A DNA stretch of 64,000 nt, taken from sequence record MF360958.1. One strand, given 5' to 3'. Every line of letters begins with the position of its first letter. Position 1 is the first letter of the stretch. Both the position numbers and the translations under genes were made by a program. The notes under the pieces are model-generated. The model searched no databases and was not told the origin of the DNA. It worked only from the letters and a program-made list of their open reading frames with translations. This document shows, in pieces, positions 1,490 through 16,484 of this stretch.

Positions 1490-1705
1490 ATGACACATGA
1501 ACAAGCATTTCAGGAATATCTAGGCAGTCCCGCAAGCGGTAAAAAAGCATTTGTTATTGAACTAGCTGAGGGTGAGAATAATCCATTTTCTAAAATTGCT
1601 GGTGGAAAAATTACTGGTCGTGGTCGTATGATTATGAAAAGCAATGCTCTGTATATTGAAGCGGAGAGTTGTTCAAACAATGAAGCGCAAGAGCTTACAG
1701 TTTAA
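1490..1705 (+). CDS. Small hypothetical protein, probably late-expressed
   Basis: AAGGAG RBS, TATAAATA box at 1433-1440, terminator downstream. Confidence 0.7.
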   Translation: MTHEQAFQEYLGSPASGKKAFVIELAEGENNPFSKIAGGKITGRGRMIMKSNALYIEAESCSNNEAQELTV

Positions 1706-1730
1706 ATAATACATTTTAAACATAGAACTA

Positions 1731-1757
1731 AAAAAGCCTCCATAAAGGAGGCTTTTT
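1731..1757. terminator. Bidirectional intrinsic terminator
   Basis: aaaaagcctcc-ataaa-ggaggcttttt between convergent genes. Confidence 0.85.
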
Positions 1758-1759
1758 AT

Positions 1760-2641
1760 TTATACAGCCACTTGTGGTTTTGGAGTTTTCATAGGTGTTT
1801 TATTAACACGACCGTTATACAAAACATCTTCCCATTTCATATATAATAAATCATCAATTGTGTTTAATGATTTATTTAATTTTACACCAGTTTCATTCTC
1901 ATAATATTCACGTGTTAGAATCTCTTCTGTGTATTCTATCTGATTAGTGTATATATGTGCATCTGTTAGATCTATAGCCAGATGTCCTACATCCATATTA
2001 ACTAATTCAGCCATTGCAAGAAGGTATAAAGCATATTGTTGGTAATTGAAAGGGAGTCCAAATACCGCATCAGAACTACGTGAAAATACTTTGAGATTTA
2101 ATACTTTACTACCTTCGTCATTCTTAGTTACTACAAATTGATGAGAATGGAAACAAGGCAATAGTGCCATTTCATGAGATTGAGCCGGATTCCAAAATGT
2201 AACATAATGACGACGACTGAAAGGATTGTTTCTCAATTGTTCTACAGTATCTAATAATTGATCAATATGTTCTCCATTGAAGTTGCGTAGTTGATATCCA
2301 TAAGCTTTTCCCATTGATCCAGTAGGTTCATCGTATAAACCTCGGTTATCTAAGAATTCTCGTGAAGTGTTACCTTCCCAAATTTTAATACCACGATTTA
2401 TAAGATGATTGGTATCCGTTACACCGTTTAGAAACATCCAAAATTCTTCAAACGCAAATCTCAACGGTGTAGGTCGCACTGAAGCGCTCGGGAAATACTC
2501 GCTACAATTAAAAATTAATTGCTGATTGAATAGTTTACGACAACCAAATCCAGTTCGATCTTCTGTATCAACACCATGATTATAAATGTTATTTAATAAA
2601 TTGACGTATCCACTTTCGTTATGATATTGTTGATTAAACAT
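1760..2641 (-). CDS. thyA: Thymidylate synthase
   Basis: DRTG, EEFWMFLNG, YGYQLR, MALLPCF (catalytic Cys), RSSD, GLPFN, DAHIY. Start placed at the ATG at 2641, which has a GGAG RBS. Confidence 0.95.
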   Translation of the reverse strand: MFNQQYHNESGYVNLLNNIYNHGVDTEDRTGFGCRKLFNQQLIFNCSEYFPSASVRPTPLRFAFEEFWMFLNGVTDTNHLINRGIKIWEGNTSREFLDNRGLYDEPTGSMGKAYGYQLRNFNGEHIDQLLDTVEQLRNNPFSRRHYVTFWNPAQSHEMALLPCFHSHQFVVTKNDEGSKVLNLKVFSRSSDAVFGLPFNYQQYALYLLAMAELVNMDVGHLAIDLTDAHIYTNQIEYTEEILTREYYENETGVKLNKSLNTIDDLLYMKWEDVLYNGRVNKTPMKTPKPQVAV

Positions 2642-7729: not shown

Positions 7730-9196
7730 ATGAGAAATAATGGATTTAATAAAAATAAAGTCCCGACAATCAACTATGTAAGTGAGCTAACAGGATCAGG
7801 AAAAACAGAATATATTATTAATAAAATAGCAGATGAAGTAACGTATGGGGATGAATATTTTCTTATAGTTACCCCTAATAGAACACTATGTGATGAAATA
7901 TACAGTCGTTTCTTTATTCTAGATAATTTCAATGATGAATGTGTGATGAATATTCATCAGAAAAGTGTAGAAAATCCTTCATCAGAACTTAAAACACGTC
8001 TAAGAAATAAAACCCGAAATGTTCTAATTACCACACATGCCTCATTCATTCTTGGTGTACGATCAACACAAATGCTTGATGACTGGAACCTCATTATGGA
8101 TGAGGAAATGTCATTGTATAAAGAGCATGAGATTAATGTAACGAAACCAACGGTTGATATCCTTAATTCAACAATCACTTACAAAGAATACGATAGTAAT
8201 TTTTATAGAATTGAAGCATCTAATGTATTATTATGGATGAATATTGCTAATGAGACAATTAAGGATAGTTTTTTACATAATAATGATTACACGGATATGG
8301 TAAAGCATGTTATGAACGATAAGTTTGTAACATTAGTCTCACAACATAACTATGAAAAGTTTGTTGAATATAATGATGAAATGGATGACAATGGTAAACG
8401 ATTCTCAAAGTTCTATGCAATGTCATTTATTAATATTGATTTTTTTAATCAATTTAAAACAGTAACCGTTATATCTTCATTCTTTGAGAAAACAATATCG
8501 TATAAGCTTTTACAAGAATTTGGTTGTAATATGAAAAAAGTGTCCGTGCCTACGTATTTTTCGAAACATCCAAATTCTGACAAAATCACATTGCATTACT
8601 TCTTTGAAAAGAATTGGAGTACCCATTTACGAAAATCTAAAGTCAATCGTCAAAAAACGATGGAAGAACTGATATATGATAAACTTATTTCTTTGATAGG
8701 TGATAAACCATTCTTGTATAATGCCAACGTAAGCTTTCGAAGTATGTTTTCTAAAGGGACATTGGCTATATCAACACATGGTATTAACCGATATAAAGGT
8801 TATTCTGAATTGGTATTCATGCCTAGTTTGAACGCAACCAGTTCAATAGTAAGTATTTTAAGCAATTTTGGGTTAAACAGGCATGATATTGATTTTTCAA
8901 GAAACGTCCTATCTGCCTACCAGTTTGTGTCACGAGGCGCTATACGCGATCTAAACAACAGTAAAGATGTCAATATCTATGTAATGGATCGAAGGACTGT
9001 TGATTTCTTAAAAACGGTATTCCCTGATGCTAAAGTTGAGTACCATGAAACTGAAATTGGACAACAGGATCAATCAAAAATACCGAACAATGTGAAAAGC
9101 TTTATCTCTCGTGTAAAGAAGCGTCTCAATAATGGGGATACGATACGTGATAAAACATTAACCAAGTATAATCATTATTTAGAAAAGTATTATTGA
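7730..9196 (+). CDS. Divergent SF2 helicase-like protein (possible origin-binding/replication type)
   Basis: LTGSGKT (I), IVTPNRTLCDE (Ia), ITTHASF (Ib), LIMDEE (II), YQFVSRGAIRD (VI). Confidence 0.65.
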   Translation: MRNNGFNKNKVPTINYVSELTGSGKTEYIINKIADEVTYGDEYFLIVTPNRTLCDEIYSRFFILDNFNDECVMNIHQKSVENPSSELKTRLRNKTRNVLITTHASFILGVRSTQMLDDWNLIMDEEMSLYKEHEINVTKPTVDILNSTITYKEYDSNFYRIEASNVLLWMNIANETIKDSFLHNNDYTDMVKHVMNDKFVTLVSQHNYEKFVEYNDEMDDNGKRFSKFYAMSFINIDFFNQFKTVTVISSFFEKTISYKLLQEFGCNMKKVSVPTYFSKHPNSDKITLHYFFEKNWSTHLRKSKVNRQKTMEELIYDKLISLIGDKPFLYNANVSFRSMFSKGTLAISTHGINRYKGYSELVFMPSLNATSSIVSILSNFGLNRHDIDFSRNVLSAYQFVSRGAIRDLNNSKDVNIYVMDRRTVDFLKTVFPDAKVEYHETEIGQQDQSKIPNNVKSFISRVKKRLNNGDTIRDKTLTKYNHYLEKYY

Positions 9197-9527: not shown

Positions 9528-11942
9528 ATGAAACTAATACCTAATCGTTTTGTAAAGTTAAAAAACGTCACTCCTTTTGATATTCTTACGTTTTACACGC
9601 TTGAGCTTGAAAATGATCAACATCCATTCCCCAAATCTTCACATAATGAATATTCTAAAATTACATATGTTGATAACGAAAGCGATATTAGAATTAAACA
9701 ATATAGTCTATATGAAACTATATTGAAACCAATCTATGATAGTTGTTTTTGGAACCTTGATAGTATCAAAACTGTCAAATCTAATATTGATAATGGAAAA
9801 AATCTTTGGGAAGGTATCAAATTTTATCATATAAATGATACGGCCACTGATGATCAATTTATCCAGCATTCATATTCCTATGAAGATGGTTTTAATGATT
9901 ATTACACAGCGAGGTATCTTTCTAAGGTTCATAGTGAATTAGATTCTATTAAAATATGCAACTTATTTCATGATGGCGACTATTCTTTCATTAATAATAC
10001 AATTGAACATATTGACAATATAAAGAATAAAGATTTCTCTCAGGGAGATCCTCATGAAACAGTAAAAGATGGTTTATTAATACACCATTATAGCAATAAT
10101 ATAAAAATGCATAATAACAATGTATTAAACTACAATTATAATGTTTTAATTGATTCATTTGATGATATAGAGAATCAGTTATTTCCAGTTGAAAGCATTA
10201 TTGAATGTTCTTCATTCAGTGCATTAAGCAGTAATGCATTTAAACAGGTTATCAAATATCTTTATGAAAAGAATAGTAATAATTTTGATATGTTAAACAA
10301 CGATACGGCTGTTCATAAAGATTACCCAAGCATGTTCTGTGAGAACAGCAACCTTTATCGTTCATACATTCGTTCTCAGGATGATAACAATGTTTTGAAC
10401 ACACTGTACCATGATGCATCAATTATTGATTCGATGATTGAACGAGTTACCAGTATTGATTTGATAAGTCGCAAATGGCAATCAATAGATAGTAAAGAAA
10501 CGTTTGAAAAATATATTGATCAGTGCTTTGTATTTTGTAAAAATACTATTGAAAAATTCTTCAATATTCATATTGATATGAAGGATGACTATCAAATCGG
10601 TTTGATTGGAAAATTAGTATTTTGGTTACTGAATATATATTATTCCTTCAATGAAACCCATGTTGAGCATTTTTTCAATGTTCCTTATTTAAATCAGTTT
10701 AGTGATGAGAATTTTGAAATGCCTCTAATTATACTACGAGGGTATAATATTACTTACACAATGAGTGTTGATATTAGTGAAGAGTTCAGGTACACGAATC
10801 TTAAACAGTTTTCAAAGTTAACCGGTTTTGATAAAGACTACAAAAGGATGGAACGTAACGAATTATATAAAAATAGCAGTAATGGAGAATATTTGTATAG
10901 TTTTCAGGCAGAATATGAAGGCGATTTTAATTCATCCAATACCAATACTATTCAAGATAAAAATCTCTACGATGAGGTATTAGCAAATACTCATGAAAAT
11001 ATCAGTGAAAATATTAAAATGATGATTGCATTTGATTATGCAATTAATGATTTTTCAAAAGACAATATTGTTGATTTTAATGATTTTGAATCCATTCTAG
11101 ATTCTGAAACGTTTAAAACTATAATGAATAAAAGCATTCAGCAATTATATGATGAAGGTTATAGAAAGACTATAAGCCTTAATAGTTGTGAACCGCATGA
11201 TGCTCTCACGCCCGGTGATATTAAAAGAGATGCAATAGTGTATTCTCAAAGCGAAGAAGGTGATAAACGAAGTTACCGTATACCTTATGATAACGGTATT
11301 AACCCAAACGATCCTAAAGAATGTGTATATGATCTTGTTTCAACATGCAGTTCATTATGCGATATTATCTTTTATAATATTAAAATGAACGTTGTTGATG
11401 AATTTATTAATGATTTTATTATAAATAAAGAACATATCAATGAAATAGAAAACTATAATCCTATAGAACATCTGGTAGTAGATGGTTCTAGAGAGTATAA
11501 TGTTTCAGCAATACTATCTCTTAATAAATTAGTTAATCAAATGTTTATAGGTAATATTGTCATTAATAAAACAATGGTAGATGATATTAATATGAATGTA
11601 TCTTACTTAGTTAATTTCTTAAAACATACAACAGAAGTTGGGAATGAATTTTATTTTGTATTTGATAGTGTAGAATATTTTAAAAAATTCACATCTCTCA
11701 TAAAAGTGATCTTTTATGGTTTAGATCATTATCTAGGGAATCGTAAAACTTATCATGATTTAGAAGATGTTTCTGAAGCAACACATATTACATCATTATT
11801 TGATAAGAAAATACGACTATTGATGAAGTATAAAAAACACAATAACCGTTTCAAACTTCAGTATAATGTGGATGAAACGCAAAAAGTGTTTGAAAAGCTC
11901 TTTCAAGAATCACGGCAAAGAGATATTTTTACAAATTATTAG
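9528..11942 (+). CDS. Large hypothetical protein (804 aa)
   Basis: Long ORF; upstream TTGACT-N16-TAAACT at 9456-9483; no recognised motif. Confidence 0.8.
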   Translation: MKLIPNRFVKLKNVTPFDILTFYTLELENDQHPFPKSSHNEYSKITYVDNESDIRIKQYSLYETILKPIYDSCFWNLDSIKTVKSNIDNGKNLWEGIKFYHINDTATDDQFIQHSYSYEDGFNDYYTARYLSKVHSELDSIKICNLFHDGDYSFINNTIEHIDNIKNKDFSQGDPHETVKDGLLIHHYSNNIKMHNNNVLNYNYNVLIDSFDDIENQLFPVESIIECSSFSALSSNAFKQVIKYLYEKNSNNFDMLNNDTAVHKDYPSMFCENSNLYRSYIRSQDDNNVLNTLYHDASIIDSMIERVTSIDLISRKWQSIDSKETFEKYIDQCFVFCKNTIEKFFNIHIDMKDDYQIGLIGKLVFWLLNIYYSFNETHVEHFFNVPYLNQFSDENFEMPLIILRGYNITYTMSVDISEEFRYTNLKQFSKLTGFDKDYKRMERNELYKNSSNGEYLYSFQAEYEGDFNSSNTNTIQDKNLYDEVLANTHENISENIKMMIAFDYAINDFSKDNIVDFNDFESILDSETFKTIMNKSIQQLYDEGYRKTISLNSCEPHDALTPGDIKRDAIVYSQSEEGDKRSYRIPYDNGINPNDPKECVYDLVSTCSSLCDIIFYNIKMNVVDEFINDFIINKEHINEIENYNPIEHLVVDGSREYNVSAILSLNKLVNQMFIGNIVINKTMVDDINMNVSYLVNFLKHTTEVGNEFYFVFDSVEYFKKFTSLIKVIFYGLDHYLGNRKTYHDLEDVSEATHITSLFDKKIRLLMKYKKHNNRFKLQYNVDETQKVFEKLFQESRQRDIFTNY

Positions 11943-11963
11943 AGTTTATGAACAGTATGTCTA

Positions 11964-12158
11964 TTAGAATTGACCTCCCATAGACATACTGTTCATTTCC
12001 ATTTTCTTTTTAAGTGATTCAATGACATGTTTCTTTTCGGCCCCTGATAATGTCCATGCTTCCTCATAACTTATAGAACCATTAGAGAACATCACAATAT
12101 AGGAAATGTCTTCTTGATATTGTGATTCCGTTTCTGGATAACGGTCAATCATGGACAT
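11964..12158 (-). CDS. Small tail/baseplate assembly ORF; probably the -1 frameshift extension of the upstream gene
   Basis: ISYEEAWTLS..E motif as in P2 E'/lambda T-like extensions; its frame stays open back to the slippery site at 12194-12200. Confidence 0.65.
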   Translation of the reverse strand: MSMIDRYPETESQYQEDISYIVMFSNGSISYEEAWTLSGAEKKHVIESLKKKMEMNSMSMGGQF

Positions 12159-12178
12159 AATTTCTTCCGGCTCAGCTA

Positions 12179-13105
12179 TCAGGAGCCATTTTCGAAAAAA
12201 TCTGTTAGATTAATATCGAAAATTTGATTCCATTCATGTCCACATTCTTGACATGTAATGGTTTCGGTATCATCGAGTCCTTTATTATTAATCTCGGAGA
12301 TCTTGTCTTTAATGCTCATATAACTATCGGTGTCGAGATCGTACATCCATTGAACAATTTCATCATAATCGTCTACGTATTCATCAACACCTTCATTGTC
12401 GTCTTTAACATGGACATAGAGGATATTTTTTGCATACGTTTCAATTGCTGATTGAGACATGTCTTTAAAGACTTCTCCGAGCATTCCATAGAATCGTGTT
12501 TTTTGATCTTCAAAATCTTCACTCTCAAATTCTTCTTCAGTGAGGTTATTGATTTTGTTTTCAATTTCGCGTAAGCGTTTTCTTTCTTTGAAATGCTGGT
12601 TGTCTACATCAATATGTTCTTCATAAAGACTTGGACGTAAATATACTGTTAATAATGTGGATTCGTCTTGGCTTAATTCAACAGTATATTGTTCATCAAG
12701 TGTATCAATGCTATTGAGGATTTTGTCTAAATCGCGTGTATATTCAAATTGATGACCGCATTCTTCGTTAGGGCAAGTAACGCTGAAGTTATAAGTAGTA
12801 CTACTATTAGACGCCATTTTGATACCTACAAGTAATGCGTCTACATCTGATTTAATAAGTTTCTTGGGATTAATGTTGAGTGTAGTACAATCTCGAATGA
12901 GACTTTCTACCGCAGAACCATTAATAATAGATTCTGGATTTTTTAGTTCAAGCTCATTCATAGTTGTCATGGGCATAACCCCAACTTCTCCTAGAATGCT
13001 AAGTTCTTCACTTTTATCGATATCACCTTCATTATAAAAATTAAGTTGTGAAGGAAGTGTGAAATAAAACTTAGGTTTGCGGTAATATTTCTGAAGTGCA
13101 GACAT
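12179..13105 (-). CDS. T4 gp26-like baseplate hub / tail assembly chaperone
   Basis: LQKYYRKPKFYFTLPS N-terminus, PMTTMNELELKNP, CPNEEC and CQEC zinc-knuckle pairs, C-terminal DFF; CATAAATA late box at 13154-13161 (minus strand). Confidence 0.7.
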   Translation of the reverse strand: MSALQKYYRKPKFYFTLPSQLNFYNEGDIDKSEELSILGEVGVMPMTTMNELELKNPESIINGSAVESLIRDCTTLNINPKKLIKSDVDALLVGIKMASNSSTTYNFSVTCPNEECGHQFEYTRDLDKILNSIDTLDEQYTVELSQDESTLLTVYLRPSLYEEHIDVDNQHFKERKRLREIENKINNLTEEEFESEDFEDQKTRFYGMLGEVFKDMSQSAIETYAKNILYVHVKDDNEGVDEYVDDYDEIVQWMYDLDTDSYMSIKDKISEINNKGLDDTETITCQECGHEWNQIFDINLTDFFENGS

Positions 13106-13259: not shown

Positions 13260-16200
13260 ATGGCTGAAAATACCTATTTAACAGGCGCGTTTTTTGATAA
13301 TAATATGCCTCAATGGGCTACTGAAGAAACACTGTCACGCCTTAGTCAACAAATAAAAAGCTCTAATAACCTTTCCAATAATCAACAAAATAAAATTATT
13401 AATCTATTACAAGGTATTTCTCAGAGCTTAAAATCTGGTGATGAAAAGAAAATGCTTGAAGAAATGGAGAAATTTAATAAATCCATAGAAAAAGCACGTT
13501 CTGATATTACGGATCAAAATAAACAATCCACTAAAGAAATAACCAGTCATATTGATAAACAGACTCAATCTATCGATAAGCAAACAGAAGCTATCGAAAA
13601 ACAAACGGATGCTATTAATCGTCAGAGCAAAACCATTGAATCTCAGGATGATGGTTCAGGCGGACCATCACGCCAATCTGGAAAACCTCAAACAAGTAGT
13701 TCTGAAGGAATTCGTAGTAAAGATATTCAAGAACTTTCAGAAAGCGTTAATACAAATATAAAAAGTGTTAATAAAACTCTTTCTGACTTTCATGGATCGT
13801 TTATTAATATTTCAACACAATCACTTAAAGCAACACAAGGTACCAAAGAAGCAATGTTTTCTAAAGAGGGGTCCAGTGGCGGTAGTAGTACTGAGGGGGA
13901 TACTAAATTAAGCATTGAAAAACAAATTCAGGAAGGTAATGAGGGAGAATATGAACAATACTCTCCTAATTATAAAAAGCAATCATCTGGAAAAGATAAA
14001 AAACAAACTAATAAACAGTCCAGAGAACCAAATTCATCCTTGTCGGAACTTACTGATAATATAGCAGATACTAATGATAATATCCGAGATATTATTGATT
14101 TACTTAAAGAAAAGGATTCCCAGCGAACTGATGGTGATGCTCCTGCTATAGGAGGCGATCAAACTGATGAACGTATAAGACAATTTGGGCATCAAGCGCG
14201 TAATCAAAGAAGTTTAATGCGCCGTGGACGTGAAAAGATAGATAGAACAAAACACGCTGGTTCAAAAATAAAACAAACTGTTAATATGTTAGACAGTACC
14301 TTGGGAAAATTAATAGCGCCACTTACTGTTTTTAGTACTGCATTATCAGGTTTGACTGCTTTAAAAGCTGCTTTTGAAGCTACTACTGATATTGTATGGA
14401 CAGCTCAAAAAGAAGTTTATAATGCAATGCATGAAACAGGTGTATCGTTCACGACATTTAATACTAATCTTCAAAATGTTGAAGATGATATACGTATGGA
14501 TGGTATTCGTTTACGTAGAATGATTGGTGAAGCAGGAATTCTTGCAGAACAAGGTATTGATATCATTAAAAAGAATACTGTTCTTATGAATCGAATGGGC
14601 ACTCAAGGGTTTTTTGGTGCTATTGAAAATATTGCTGGTGATGCCAAAGATATGGAATCTTTCATGAATCAAATGATGTTATCTCGTGAACAAATAGCTA
14701 ATTTCACAGCGGAATATATGTCTTCTTTAATAAAAGTTGGTGGTCAACTTAGGATGAATGAAAAAAATCGTCAAGAATATCTCCAGCAATTCATTAAAGA
14801 TGCATCTGCTTTTGGTCGTGTTGTTGGTAAAGGAATGGATGCTATAACAGAACGTATTAGTGAAATGCGTGATGATGATCGTTCTCGATTAATGCAAATG
14901 AAGTTTCAAAATGATCCCGAAAGAATGAGAAGATTTGAAAAGACGAGTGCTTTTTTAACCAGCCTTAATGTTGGTGAAGATGTTAAAACAGCATTTGAGG
15001 ATGCTTTATATGACCCAAGAGGTATTGGTTTGCGTGTAACGGAAATGGGTCAGAACATAATGAATACTATGCACCGTCTTAATGTTGGAGGTGCTGGAAG
15101 AGATATCAATGAATTAATAAAAGGTATTCAACAAGGTGATGTTGATCAAAAACAATTTGCTAAAGAACTTCGTGGTATTCGTGAATCGATAGTTAATAGT
15201 GAACAACCACAAGAAGAAATTAATGCTTTACTTTCAAGCGGTGATCCACAAATGCGTCGTGCTGCTCAATTAATAACCGGTATAAAACAAATTAATGATA
15301 AAATGCTTGAAAAAATTGAAAAAGGTGAAGTAATGCCTTCTGAGGCATTTAGTAATCTTACTCAACAACAAAAGCTAGCAAAGTCTGCCATTGAAGCTAC
15401 GAAAGCACAACTTGAAGAAGAAAAAGCGAAAGCGTTTGATACAGATGGTTCTCGTGAAGCAGCTGTGCGTTCGTTTGAAGCTGGTGTTGCAGCAACAGAA
15501 ATAACTAATAAGATAGCACATTATGTAAGTTCTATTGCAAGTGTGGTTCTAGACACATTACCTACAATATTAGATTATATAGAATCAATATATAATTTAT
15601 TGCCTTGGGTAGATAGTGCTGAAGAAAAGAAACAACAACAGTATTATGAAAAAGCTACTTCGGAAAATAAGGATTTAGCAGGTTCTATTAAGGCAGGAAC
15701 TAAAGCTGACAATTTTACTGAATATGGGTTTGAAAATGGTCATAATAAAAATGAACAAAAAAATGAAGCATTAAAAGAATCAACAAAAAATAATTTGGAA
15801 TTATTAGCTCGTGCTAAAGAAACAAATCCAAGTTCTCAGGTATGGGAAATGCTTCGCGAGAGAGGATTAAATGATTATGAAATAAAAGATCAAATTGAAC
15901 AAGTTCCTGAACTTATGAAAATGGCGGGTGAAAAATACGGAGAAGAATTTGTTAAAAAAATAGAGAGAAGTGCAAAACATTACAAAAAAATAGCAGATGA
16001 ACGTCAACAGCAACGGTATAAGGAAGATCTTGCTGATATGACTTCCAAACAATTAAGAAGCGAAATGGAAAAATTAAATTTACAGAAAACTAAAACAGAA
16101 GCAAAAGCGGCTATTCCAGAAGAATTTACAACGATAGGTAAAAATTCAAATAATGCCGGTGATATTCAATCGACCGCTAAAGAAAGACTGGAAGAACTTG

Positions 16201-16484
16201 AAAAACGCACTAAAGCTGTTGAAGATAGTTTAGAAAAACAACGCCAAGATAAGATTGATGAATTCAACAAAAAAGCACCCGATGCACTCAAGGAAAAATT
16301 AGGTGGTGAAATCACTCAAGATATGGTTAAAAATAATAATCTTGACGTAGAGAAGAAGACTGATACTATTGAAAGTAGTAAAAATATTGAAGATAGTAAA
16401 GATAGAAAACGAATGATTGAATTACTTCAAGAAATTGCTCGTAGTACGAGAAATACAGAAAATAACACACAAGACAATATCTAA
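13260..16484 (+). CDS. Tape-measure-like tail protein
   Basis: 1074 aa, largely helical/coiled composition, N-terminal WATEETL motif, divergent from the gp26-like gene, late box at 13216-13223. Confidence 0.55.
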   Translation: MAENTYLTGAFFDNNMPQWATEETLSRLSQQIKSSNNLSNNQQNKIINLLQGISQSLKSGDEKKMLEEMEKFNKSIEKARSDITDQNKQSTKEITSHIDKQTQSIDKQTEAIEKQTDAINRQSKTIESQDDGSGGPSRQSGKPQTSSSEGIRSKDIQELSESVNTNIKSVNKTLSDFHGSFINISTQSLKATQGTKEAMFSKEGSSGGSSTEGDTKLSIEKQIQEGNEGEYEQYSPNYKKQSSGKDKKQTNKQSREPNSSLSELTDNIADTNDNIRDIIDLLKEKDSQRTDGDAPAIGGDQTDERIRQFGHQARNQRSLMRRGREKIDRTKHAGSKIKQTVNMLDSTLGKLIAPLTVFSTALSGLTALKAAFEATTDIVWTAQKEVYNAMHETGVSFTTFNTNLQNVEDDIRMDGIRLRRMIGEAGILAEQGIDIIKKNTVLMNRMGTQGFFGAIENIAGDAKDMESFMNQMMLSREQIANFTAEYMSSLIKVGGQLRMNEKNRQEYLQQFIKDASAFGRVVGKGMDAITERISEMRDDDRSRLMQMKFQNDPERMRRFEKTSAFLTSLNVGEDVKTAFEDALYDPRGIGLRVTEMGQNIMNTMHRLNVGGAGRDINELIKGIQQGDVDQKQFAKELRGIRESIVNSEQPQEEINALLSSGDPQMRRAAQLITGIKQINDKMLEKIEKGEVMPSEAFSNLTQQQKLAKSAIEATKAQLEEEKAKAFDTDGSREAAVRSFEAGVAATEITNKIAHYVSSIASVVLDTLPTILDYIESIYNLLPWVDSAEEKKQQQYYEKATSENKDLAGSIKAGTKADNFTEYGFENGHNKNEQKNEALKESTKNNLELLARAKETNPSSQVWEMLRERGLNDYEIKDQIEQVPELMKMAGEKYGEEFVKKIERSAKHYKKIADERQQQRYKEDLADMTSKQLRSEMEKLNLQKTKTEAKAAIPEEFTTIGKNSNNAGDIQSTAKERLEELEKRTKAVEDSLEKQRQDKIDEFNKKAPDALKEKLGGEITQDMVKNNNLDVEKKTDTIESSKNIEDSKDRKRMIELLQEIARSTRNTENNTQDNI

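Follow-up and report, generated by a model that had tools for sequence, protein, structure and literature searches.

A putative programmed -1 ribosomal frameshift at the end of a gp26/gp51-family gene in Salicola phage SCTP-2 and its relatives

Gene 88 of the giant Salicola phage SCTP-2 (MF360958.1) terminates shortly after a run of six T, and a small ORF annotated as gene 87 follows it in the -1 frame. The question raised by this locus is whether these are two genes, each with its own start, or a single gene from which two proteins are made. We addressed it in a stretch of 64,000 nucleotides of the record (hereafter the window, whose coordinates are used throughout) and in related phages. The initial annotation had proposed that a -1 slip joins gene 88 to the next ORF and gives products of 308 and roughly 380 aa, a proposal that the comparative sequence evidence presented here strongly supports. 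Judging from this evidence, gene 88 is very probably one gene encoding two proteins through programmed -1 ribosomal frameshifting at T TTT TTC, and gene 87 is unlikely to be a separate gene.

The gene 88 locus and its protein family

Gene 88 occupies positions 12179-13105 on the minus strand and, according to the ORF list, encodes in frame 0 the short product of 308 aa. Read on the minus strand of the window, its final codons are GAT TTT TTC GAA AAT GGC TCC TGA. The heptamer T TTT TTC (12200-12194) is composed of the last base of codon 302 and the Phe codons 303 and 304, so that it lies in the X XXY YYZ register of a slippery site, and both its register and its coordinates, as initially annotated, were borne out on the minus strand. 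The frame-0 stop TGA (12181-12179) starts 19 nt past the first base of the heptamer. In the -1 frame of the same strand, a TAA is found at 12212-12210, 9 nt 5' of the heptamer, and from the heptamer onwards the frame is open for 78 codons until a TAA at 11966-11964 (extension, 11964-12200). This confirms the earlier observation that the -1 frame is closed just before the slip site and then open into the 64-aa ORF. The latter, annotated as gene 87 (11964-12158, minus strand), is the part of the -1 ORF lying 3' of its first ATG, at position 12158.

The mechanism we propose is the following. Most ribosomes would stay in frame 0 and stop at 12181-12179, giving the 308-aa protein of the gp26/gp51 family. 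Some would instead slip back by one base with both Phe codons of T TTT TTC in the P and A sites, where the Phe-tRNA would be able to re-pair fully after the slip. The slipped ribosomes would then read 76 further codons, leading to a predicted product of 380 aa (304 frame-0 residues followed by 76 codons of the -1 frame) that would carry a small helical domain at its C-terminus.

We did not observe an over-representation of the heptamer in the window, where TTTTTTC occurs 43 times against an expectation of 46 +/- 6. The slip site of gene 88 taken alone is therefore at chance level, and its significance comes from its conservation among relatives.

Based on its sequence, the product of gene 88 is a member of the T4 gp26/gp51 family (PF12322, PHROG 150). 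It matches phrog_150, 'baseplate hub', at 4.6e-24, and an HMM built from nine T4-type members matches it at 1.4e-7. A direct match of the SCTP-2 protein to PF12322 was not found at E <= 0.01, and PF12322 was detected in 12 out of 13 of its database homologs (27-48% identity). Across 18 sequences, residues C111, C116, C285, C288, F303 and F304 are invariant, and the CxxC...FF stretch near the C-terminus can be aligned to its counterpart in T4 gp26. When the AlphaFold model of the 308-aa protein (pLDDT 84.8) was compared with predicted structures, entries carrying the names baseplate protein or T4-like baseplate hub assembly protein were matched with E values of 1e-20 to 1e-19. No relation to a solved structure emerged from the PDB, in which the best E value was 0.55 for the model by fold and 0.042 for the gene 88 profile by sequence, the latter corresponding to designed helical proteins. 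With a cutoff of E <= 0.001, the profile search returned 2,544 protein clusters, among them those of abundant marine cyanophages. A second full-length gene of the PF12322 type was not found in SCTP-2.

A GC stem (GGCTC-N9-GAGCC, 12187-12169, minus strand) had also been pointed out in this region. The stem is indeed present 6 nt past the heptamer, with arms at 12187-12183 and 12173-12169, but it does not exceed chance and covariation in the relatives is not significant, so we regard it as a candidate stimulatory hairpin. In SCTP-2, the folding energy of the region is -8.1 kcal/mol (z = -1.0), a value also reached by 29 of 200 shuffled sequences. Among 15 distinct relatives, 81% of the cells of the stem are paired, compared with 17-60% in slid controls; the stem is broken in loci L002 and L010-L012. 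Within the SCTP-2 clade, covariation did not reach significance (21/500) and the hairpin was not recovered by RNAalifold. Both arms also encode conserved residues of the -1 frame. Relatives with an A AAT TTT site form a clade with strong hairpins (z down to -6.6), again with no significant covariation. Since the SCTP-2 stem has a chance-level energy and covariation is not significant in either clade, we did not retain the hairpin as proof of frameshifting. An Rfam search of positions 11800-12400 gave nothing credible.

The slip site and the -1 frame in relatives

The slippery signal is conserved well beyond SCTP-2. At the homologous place, an in-register X XXY YYZ heptamer is present in all 76 distinct loci of Rak2-like and SCTP-2-like phages, which were taken from 80 loci with a raw heptamer tally of 32/43/4/1; the distinct loci carry T TTT TTC (39), A AAT TTT (32), T TTT TTT (4) or T TTT TTA (1). 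We also found an in-register heptamer in three further isolates (CBB, Phosso and XacN1) and in S-WAM1, OLIVR5 and LPCS28, which belong to other T4-superfamily phages, while T TTT TTC is kept in 54 out of 54 distinct cyanophage-type loci. The same arrangement thus recurs in more than 130 distinct loci, obtained from independent isolates and metagenomes by different groups and assembly methods, although these loci are phylogenetically related and their counts do not represent independent events. The relatives share as little as about 24% identity with the SCTP-2 protein. In the first IMG/VR set, one of the two collecting patterns included the FF peptide, which biases this set towards the peptide, not towards particular codons.

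The codon that precedes the two Phe codons, or their equivalent, is informative in this respect. Before T TTT TTN, eight kinds were observed (GAT, AAT, AGT, CAT, CGT, TAT, ACT and TTT), all of them ending in T, and before A AAT TTT three kinds (GTA, GCA and ATA), all ending in A. Over the 76 loci, 11 different codons therefore keep the required wobble base constant while the amino acid varies. Cyanophage-type loci have TCT, AGT or GCT at this position. As a background, in-register heptamers occur 100 times in 20,021 codons from the bodies of these same genes, or 0.005 per codon.

Conservation extends to the -1 frame, which is coding. The -1 ORF that follows the heptamer has 73-86 codons in all 76 distinct loci, and 59-86 codons when all relatives are considered. 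Residues of the SCTP-2 -1 frame are conserved over the 76 loci at L6 (89%), P11 (64%), G41 (91%) and W49 (68%), and the conserved columns begin at the first codons, upstream of any ATG. The initial annotation had suggested looking in homologs for a conserved slippery site and for coding conservation of the -1 frame 5' of the small ORF's ATG, and both were found; among these loci, we encountered no homolog that had lost the site or that interrupted the -1 frame bridge with a stop.

We then considered that no frameshift takes place, that gene 87 is translated from the ATG at 12158 or by termination-reinitiation, and that the T run merely encodes two conserved Phe residues. The -1 ORF of SCTP-2 does contain an ATG at codon 15, 20 nt past the frame-0 stop, which would make separate initiation possible there, and in some relatives, too, an ATG occurs 14-16 codons after the -1 ORF begins. 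The GenBank records examined, which annotate two separate genes or none, and the chance frequency of the heptamer in the window would also be in line with such a reading. On the other hand, the ATG is not conserved: 50 of the 76 distinct loci have none in the first 20 codons of the -1 ORF, the first one coming after codon 20 in 48 loci and being absent altogether in 2. Only one of the 74 loci with an ATG showed an SD-like sequence ahead of the first one, and a pattern search upstream of the gene 87 ATG, where the initial annotation had noted a weak ribosome binding site, found none. Moreover, independent initiation would not account for the conservation of L6 and P11, which lie upstream of the ATG, nor for a preceding codon whose wobble base always suits the heptamer despite a varying amino acid. 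Finally, T4 gene 26, which is directly followed by gene 25 and has no downstream extension ORF, encodes the homologous FF as TTC TTT after GAG, a sequence that is not slippery. Considering all of the above, we find a separate gene 87 improbable.

Transcriptional slippage, with RNA polymerase adding or dropping a base in the six-T run, appears slightly less probable still. In bacteria and their elements, RNA polymerase is known to slip on runs of A or T, and a run of 6-7 T is found in SCTP-2 and about half of the relatives; six T are, however, short for efficient slippage of the polymerase. In addition, 32 of the 76 loci carry A AAT TTT, a sequence that is no homopolymer and yet constitutes a canonical heptamer for tandem slippage, and the site always stands in the register of ribosomal tandem slippage, which a polymerase would not need. 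Chance or artefact, meaning an AT-rich genome with a coincidentally open frame or a homopolymer sequencing error that splits one gene, is very unlikely: the heptamer count and the hairpin are at chance level in the window and homopolymers are error-prone in some sequencing chemistries, but the arrangement is found in more than 130 distinct loci, with a frame-0 stop that always starts 7-40 nt past the first base of the heptamer, and a sequencing error is discounted because it would not recur at all loci.

A programmed -1 ribosomal frameshift in gene 88 therefore remains the reading that we favor. We found no description of it in the full-text literature outside subscription journals or in the GenBank annotations examined.

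Counterparts in T4, cyanophages and lambda

The closest parallel, which the initial annotation did not see, is offered by T4 gp26 and gp51, and we believe it to be a better comparison than lambda: gp26 would be the counterpart of the short form and gp51 that of the long form. Both T4 proteins match PF12322 (8.8e-64 and 3.9e-52, respectively), and gp51 consists of a PF12322 part (residues 1-201) followed by a C-terminal part that matches phrog_634. Like the short form in SCTP-2, gp26 ends just past the FF, and like the long form, gp51 runs on into an extension of ~50 aa, which in T4 is in frame. Unlike in SCTP-2, the short and the long protein are encoded in T4 by separate, divergently transcribed genes (26 and 51) without a slippery site, and an internal in-frame product, 26', is annotated in the T4 record. 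The SCTP-2 protein is also about 100 aa longer than T4 gp26. The absence of the slip site is shared by T4, avDM7 and Acinetobacter phage 3014, and in all three a second PF12322 gene, gp51, adjoins.

A published listing gives gp26 and gp51 of T4 as chaperones of hub assembly; the particle itself does not contain gp51 (PMC3004832). Given this listing, the slip rate in gene 88 would fix the ratio of two assembly factors of the baseplate hub, should its products act as chaperones as well.

How far the extension itself is related to gp51 depends on the phage. The -1 ORFs of S-WAM1, OLIVR5 and LPCS28 match phrog_634 (4e-31, 3e-8 and 6e-11, respectively), and that of S-WAM1 matches residues 200-244 of T4 gp51 at 9e-6. 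We did not obtain any phrog_634 match for the -1 ORFs of SCTP-2 and Rak2-like phages, and the comparison of the Rak2-like extension profile with the gp51 C-terminal profile was weak (hhalign E 1.3e-3, probability 18%). Otherwise they resemble gp51 in having the same position, a comparable length and an identical pair of first residues. Homology between the SCTP-2 extension and the gp51 C-terminus is thus weakly suggested.

A search of a large protein database for homologs of the extension returned the SCTP-2 entry alone, and the extension was therefore folded without an alignment. The resulting single-sequence model (pLDDT 73) has five helices, predicting that the long product ends in a small all-helical domain; in a fold search this model matched only its own entry.

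The -1 ORF of the cyanophage type, on the other hand, matches the gp51 C-terminus and may account for an observation already in the literature. Sullivan et al. (2010) described a cyanophage gp51 lacking the first ~200 aa, with no mention of a frameshift, and resemblance to the T4 gp51 C-terminus was noted for a small ORF of T4-like cyanophages and marine vibriophages (PMC3037559). These short gp51 ORFs are gathered in PHROG 634. Whereas they were treated as a separate truncated gene (PMC3037559), here they appear as the -1 frame extension of a gp26-like gene. If this is true, it would explain the recorded anomaly of a cyanophage 'gp51' that is a fifth of the T4 length.

The initial annotation had instead described the gene 88 product as a G/GT-type chaperone. 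The tail assembly chaperones of lambda (G/GT) and P2 (E/E') are produced through a conserved -1 frameshift in tail genes. Chaperones of the G/GT type are characterised by two forms that are both needed for tail assembly and absent from the virion, the short part binding the tape measure protein and the extension binding the tube protein. As an analogy of expression strategy, the description stands: in both systems the ribosome would slip back by one base on an X XXY YYZ heptamer shortly before the short ORF terminates, yielding a minority product with a C-terminal extension, and fixing the ratio of two assembly factors in this way would be the same strategy as that of G/GT. By analogy, both would also concern factors of tail morphogenesis that are thought to be chaperones and thought to be absent from the particle. 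We could not extend the description to a relationship by sequence or fold. No tail-assembly-chaperone family was matched by gene 88 in Pfam, NCBIfam or PHROGs, nor was one in the PDB by sequence or fold, and its protein differs from G/GT in being twice as large and in having a four-Cys motif.

Its location differs as well, since gene 88 does not lie between tail tube and tape-measure genes. It is flanked by a convergent gene of 804 aa and by the divergent gene 89 (13260-16484, plus strand, outside the signal), whose 1074-aa product is homologous to a major virion protein from Rak2-like phages. In the record, about 320 kb separate the locus from the tail sheath gene. Gene 89 matches RaK2 ORF088 (BLASTP 9e-8), which the RaK2 annotators likened to a tape measure protein in a record note, and its positional counterpart in CBB, CBB_251, is represented by 29 peptides in virions. 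Gene 89 gave no match to T4 gp29, Pfam, PHROGs, NCBIfam or the PDB; it is possibly the tape measure gene. As for the virion data, CBB_250, the CBB homolog of gene 88, is not listed in the CBB virion MS table, in which its neighbors are present, and the PA5oct homolog of gene 88 bears no MS note while its neighbor has one.

Meaning for the T4 superfamily

Lambda-like and P2-like phages are the textbook examples of programmed frameshifting in tail assembly genes, for which a counterpart in T4-type phages was not known. If our reading of gene 88 is correct, the same trick would be used by an unrelated protein family across a very large group of phages, providing a second counterpart of lambda G/GT that is not related to the lambda proteins themselves.

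We see an even chance that phages of the T4 superfamily usually, and probably ancestrally, obtain their pair of hub assembly factors from one gene through a -1 frameshift, and that genes 26 and 51 of T4 represent a later duplication that replaced this arrangement. Such a scenario would span Rak2-like giants, T4-like cyanophages and others. The long-puzzling, essential gp51 would then be the long form, and gp26 the short form, of a single chaperone system in which the ratio of the two is important. In addition, the extension, at present annotated as an orphan small gene or left uncalled, would require a correction in hundreds of genomes. Likewise, the two arrangements would offer a natural comparison between frameshifting and gene duplication as ways of fixing the ratio of two related proteins.

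The proposed slip site of gene 88 and its relatives

Salicola phage SCTP-2 (MF360958.1), to which the window is 100% identical, is a 440-kb myovirus of solar saltern origin, and its record lists genes 88 and 87 as 'hypothetical protein' (record position minus 62000 gives the window position used here). Gene 88 (12179-13105, minus strand) encodes 308 aa and ends in the codons GAT TTT TTC GAA AAT GGC TCC TGA, so that the heptamer T TTT TTC (12200-12194, minus) lies in the X XXY YYZ register. On the same strand, the -1 frame is closed by a TAA at 12212-12210, upstream of the heptamer, and then stays open for 78 codons, counted from the heptamer and ending with a TAA at 11966-11964; gene 87 (minus strand, 64 aa) begins within this stretch, with an ATG at 12158. 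The minus-strand reading and the ORF listing agreed with the initial annotation in all its sequence details, namely the heptamer, the -1 frame, gene 87 and the arms GGCTC/GAGCC. The window contains 43 copies of TTTTTTC (46 +/- 6 expected), no Rfam family matches the slip region of SCTP-2, and the arrangement is by itself unremarkable.

We therefore rely on relatives, as the initial annotation had proposed, and found the heptamer and an open -1 ORF in every distinct one. The DNA around gene 88 homologs came from nine metagenome contigs, 80 IMG/VR loci, six isolates of the Rak2-like group (Atu_ph07, BF, PA5oct, RaK2, 121Q and Vibrio phage 2.275.O) and three further isolates (CBB, Phosso and XacN1); removal of duplicates left 76 distinct loci, plus CBB, Phosso and XacN1. 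An in-register X XXY YYZ heptamer stands at the homologous place in 76/76 loci and in these three phages, a count in which one of the two IMG/VR collecting peptide patterns contained FF and so introduced a bias at the peptide level but none at the codon level, the second pattern and all remaining sources being free of it. Throughout this set, the heptamer lies 7-40 nt before the frame-0 stop, and the -1 ORF behind it has 72-86 codons. The codon table of the 76 loci contains two canonical types, T TTT TTN (44) and A AAT TTT (32). The residue preceding the former is Asp, Asn, Ser, His, Arg, Tyr, Thr or Phe, and that preceding the latter is Val, Ala or Ile; despite this variety, the third base of the preceding codon always fits the heptamer, in genes where T and A each take ~36% of third positions. 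The rest of these genes contains in-register heptamers at a background of 0.005 per codon.

The downstream ORF might instead be a gene of its own, as the annotated gene 87 would have it. However, the first ATG of the -1 ORF comes after codon 20 in 48/76 loci and is missing altogether in two, and an SD-like sequence precedes it in only one locus; RaK2 and PA5oct have no gene annotated there. Conservation in the -1 frame begins with the very first codons (the position 6 residue in 89% of loci, Pro 11 in 64%) and continues further on, with one Gly in 91% and one Trp in 68%. This pattern would be expected for an ORF entered from upstream through a frame shift and unexpected for an independent gene. 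The main reading of the initial annotation, a programmed -1 frameshift joining the gp26-like gene to the next ORF, is thus supported by strong comparative evidence from the heptamer and the -1 ORF. The predicted mechanism, read from sequence comparison, would be a classical tandem -1 slip, yielding a short product of 308 aa and a long product that continues into the -1 ORF (the extension).

The GC stem proposed downstream of the heptamer fared less well, since its arms are where they had been placed while folding beyond chance and covariation did not bear it out. When the 50 nt that follow the heptamer were compared with mononucleotide shuffles, the native sequences of the 76 loci folded better (mean z = -2.4; 46/76 below -1.64). 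The SCTP-2 hairpin region reaches z = -1.0, with 29/200 shuffles folding as well. The A AAT TTT clade (loci L021-L078) has long stable hairpins 2-5 nt past the heptamer that enclose the frame-0 stop (z down to -6.6), with 80% pairing against 22-57% in slid controls, and its compensatory-change counts were not significant. Because such counts were also not significant in the SCTP-2 clade, the GGCTC/GAGCC stem is broken in four relatives of that clade, and its arms double as codons for conserved -1 frame residues, the SCTP-2 hairpin is for us no more than a candidate, its role as a stimulator being unproven. Some -1 frameshifts of this kind function without a strong stimulator.

The gene 88 protein family and T4 gp26 and gp51

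The 308-aa protein matches PHROG 150 'baseplate hub' (4.6e-24) and has 13 relatives (27-69% identity) in a large protein collection, 12 of which carry PF12322 (T4_baseplate); searched against 1.8 billion representatives, a profile made from this set retrieved 2,544 clusters (E <= 0.001). Its alignment-based AlphaFold model is confident (pLDDT 84.8) and resembles predicted structures named baseplate protein or T4-like baseplate hub assembly protein (E 1e-20); among solved structures we found no relative by fold (best E 0.55) or by sequence. C111, C116, C285, C288 and the slip-site residues F303 and F304 are invariant across 18 sequences. The Cys pairs C111/C116 and C285/C288 (12242-12775, minus) lie ~170 residues apart, which suggests a zinc-binding site that would connect the central part of the chain with the C-terminus, directly before the slip site. 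The RaK2 homolog gave a sub-threshold zinc-ribbon match.

In T4, gene 26 (208 aa) has the homologous C-terminal Cys motif and FF, encoded by the non-slippery codons GAG TTC TTT, with gene 25 directly after it. Next to it and divergent from it is gene 51, a 249-aa 'baseplate hub assembly protein' that matches PF12322 over residues 1-201 (3.9e-52) and PHROG 150 over its full length; the final 100 residues of gp51 correspond to PHROG 634 'baseplate hub assembly catalyst'. We sampled distant matches of T4 gp26. Aeromonas phage avDM7 and Acinetobacter phage 3014 lack the heptamer and have gene 25 directly after and a separate gp51 adjoining, while cyanophage S-WAM1, Agrobacterium phage OLIVR5 and Cronobacter phage LPCS28 have an in-register T TTT TTC and a -1 ORF of 59-67 codons that matches PHROG 634 (4e-31, 3e-8 and 6e-11, respectively); the S-WAM1 ORF also matches T4 gp51 residues 200-244 (9e-6). 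T4 gp51 thus has, within a single frame, the layout predicted for the long product, and gp26 the layout of the short product. In all 54 distinct cyanophage-type loci from a further scan, T TTT TTC stands exactly 10 nt ahead of the stop; the codon in front of it is TCT, AGT or GCT, and a -1 ORF of 64-70 codons follows. The 'gp51' of cyanophages and marine vibriophages was described as ~20% of the T4 length, its first ~200 residues missing, with no mention of a frameshift (Sullivan et al. 2010, PMC3037559); for cyanophages, we predict that the frameshift supplies these residues.

Three observations touch on this comparison. In OLIVR5, a 46-aa ORF inside the -1 ORF (1620-1760, plus strand, of the fetched DNA L104) is named 'baseplate hub assembly catalyst' in GenBank, so its annotators noticed the likeness to gp51 but made it a separate tiny gene. 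The T4 record annotates 26' (10803-11090, minus, of the T4 DNA L099), an internal in-frame product of gene 26; in T4, too, gene 26 therefore yields more than a single product, and does so by another route. Lastly, matches to the neighbouring UniProt entries A0A343LED6/A0A343LED7 (BFVD) of Leptospira phage LE4 stand at rank 33 for the 0-frame model and at rank 8, where the match is weak, for the extension model, and the two-part arrangement may reach this unrelated-looking phage.

The predicted extension in SCTP-2

Rak2-like and SCTP-2-like extensions do not match PHROG 634, and their profile matched that of the gp51 C-terminal part and cyanophages only weakly (E 1.3e-3, probability 18%, 30 columns). 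The single-sequence model of the SCTP-2 extension is a five-helix bundle (pLDDT 73); a fold search with it retrieved, besides the entry of the extension itself, only a few small orphan proteins. In a piecewise scan of the whole SCTP-2 record with our own family profiles, gene 88 was the sole full-length gp26/gp51 family member, and its long product is therefore the only gp51-like candidate in this phage. Gene 200 (L191:25853-26296, plus, L191 being a piece of the record; record 199852-200295, outside the window) encodes a 130-aa hypothetical protein that partially and weakly matches the central part of the T4-type gp26/gp51 profile (20 bits; E 2.7e-5 in a set of 1,291 ORFs). It lacks the Cys motifs and the C-terminus and could be either a fragment of a paralog or a coincidental match. 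Position, length, shared first residues and the weak profile match hint faintly at homology between the SCTP-2 extension and gp51.

Hub assembly and known frameshifts

T4 gp26 and gp51 are listed as hub assembly chaperones, gp51 being required yet absent from the particle, and the composition of the hub, including the tape measure gp29, is described as contradictory between studies (Leiman et al. 2010, PMC3004832). The virion MS table of CBB contains the neighbours CBB_247 and CBB_251 and lacks CBB_250, the gene 88 homolog; PA5oct has an MS note on a neighbour and none on the homolog. As an absence of detection, this pattern fits a non-structural assembly factor. Divergent from gene 88, gene 89 (13260-16484, plus, 1074 aa) is homologous to RaK2 ORF088 (9e-8), which is assigned to PHROG 14121 'virion structural protein' and was likened to a tape measure by the RaK2 annotators; CBB_251, in the same position beside the gp26-like gene, is abundant in virions. 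Gene 89 may be the tape measure, but we found no family, structure or T4 gp29 match for it as such. A DEAD-box-like helicase gene (7730-9196, plus, in the window; PHROG 2467, 6.8e-103) consistently lies two genes downstream of the gp26-like one, both in SCTP-2 and in its metagenomic relatives L002, L003 and L006-L009. Outside the window, SCTP-2 genes 224, 267 and 534 (record pieces L191, L192 and L196), spread over ~210 kb, are all named 'terminase large subunit' and could be a split gene or paralogs.

The initial annotation had called the gene 88 protein a G/GT-type chaperone. By analogy this holds for the biological strategy, which gene 88 shares with lambda G/GT and P2 E/E', but not for family membership, since its protein has no sequence or fold similarity to those chaperone families and occupies a different genomic position; it belongs to the T4 gp26/gp51 family. 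In the full-text literature, whose coverage is incomplete, we found no published description of a gp26-type frameshift, and none of the GenBank records examined for these phages annotates a joined CDS. The finding reaches well beyond the window: the frameshift seems to be shared generally within a large family of phage proteins, and it links two enigmatic T4 proteins, gp26 and gp51.
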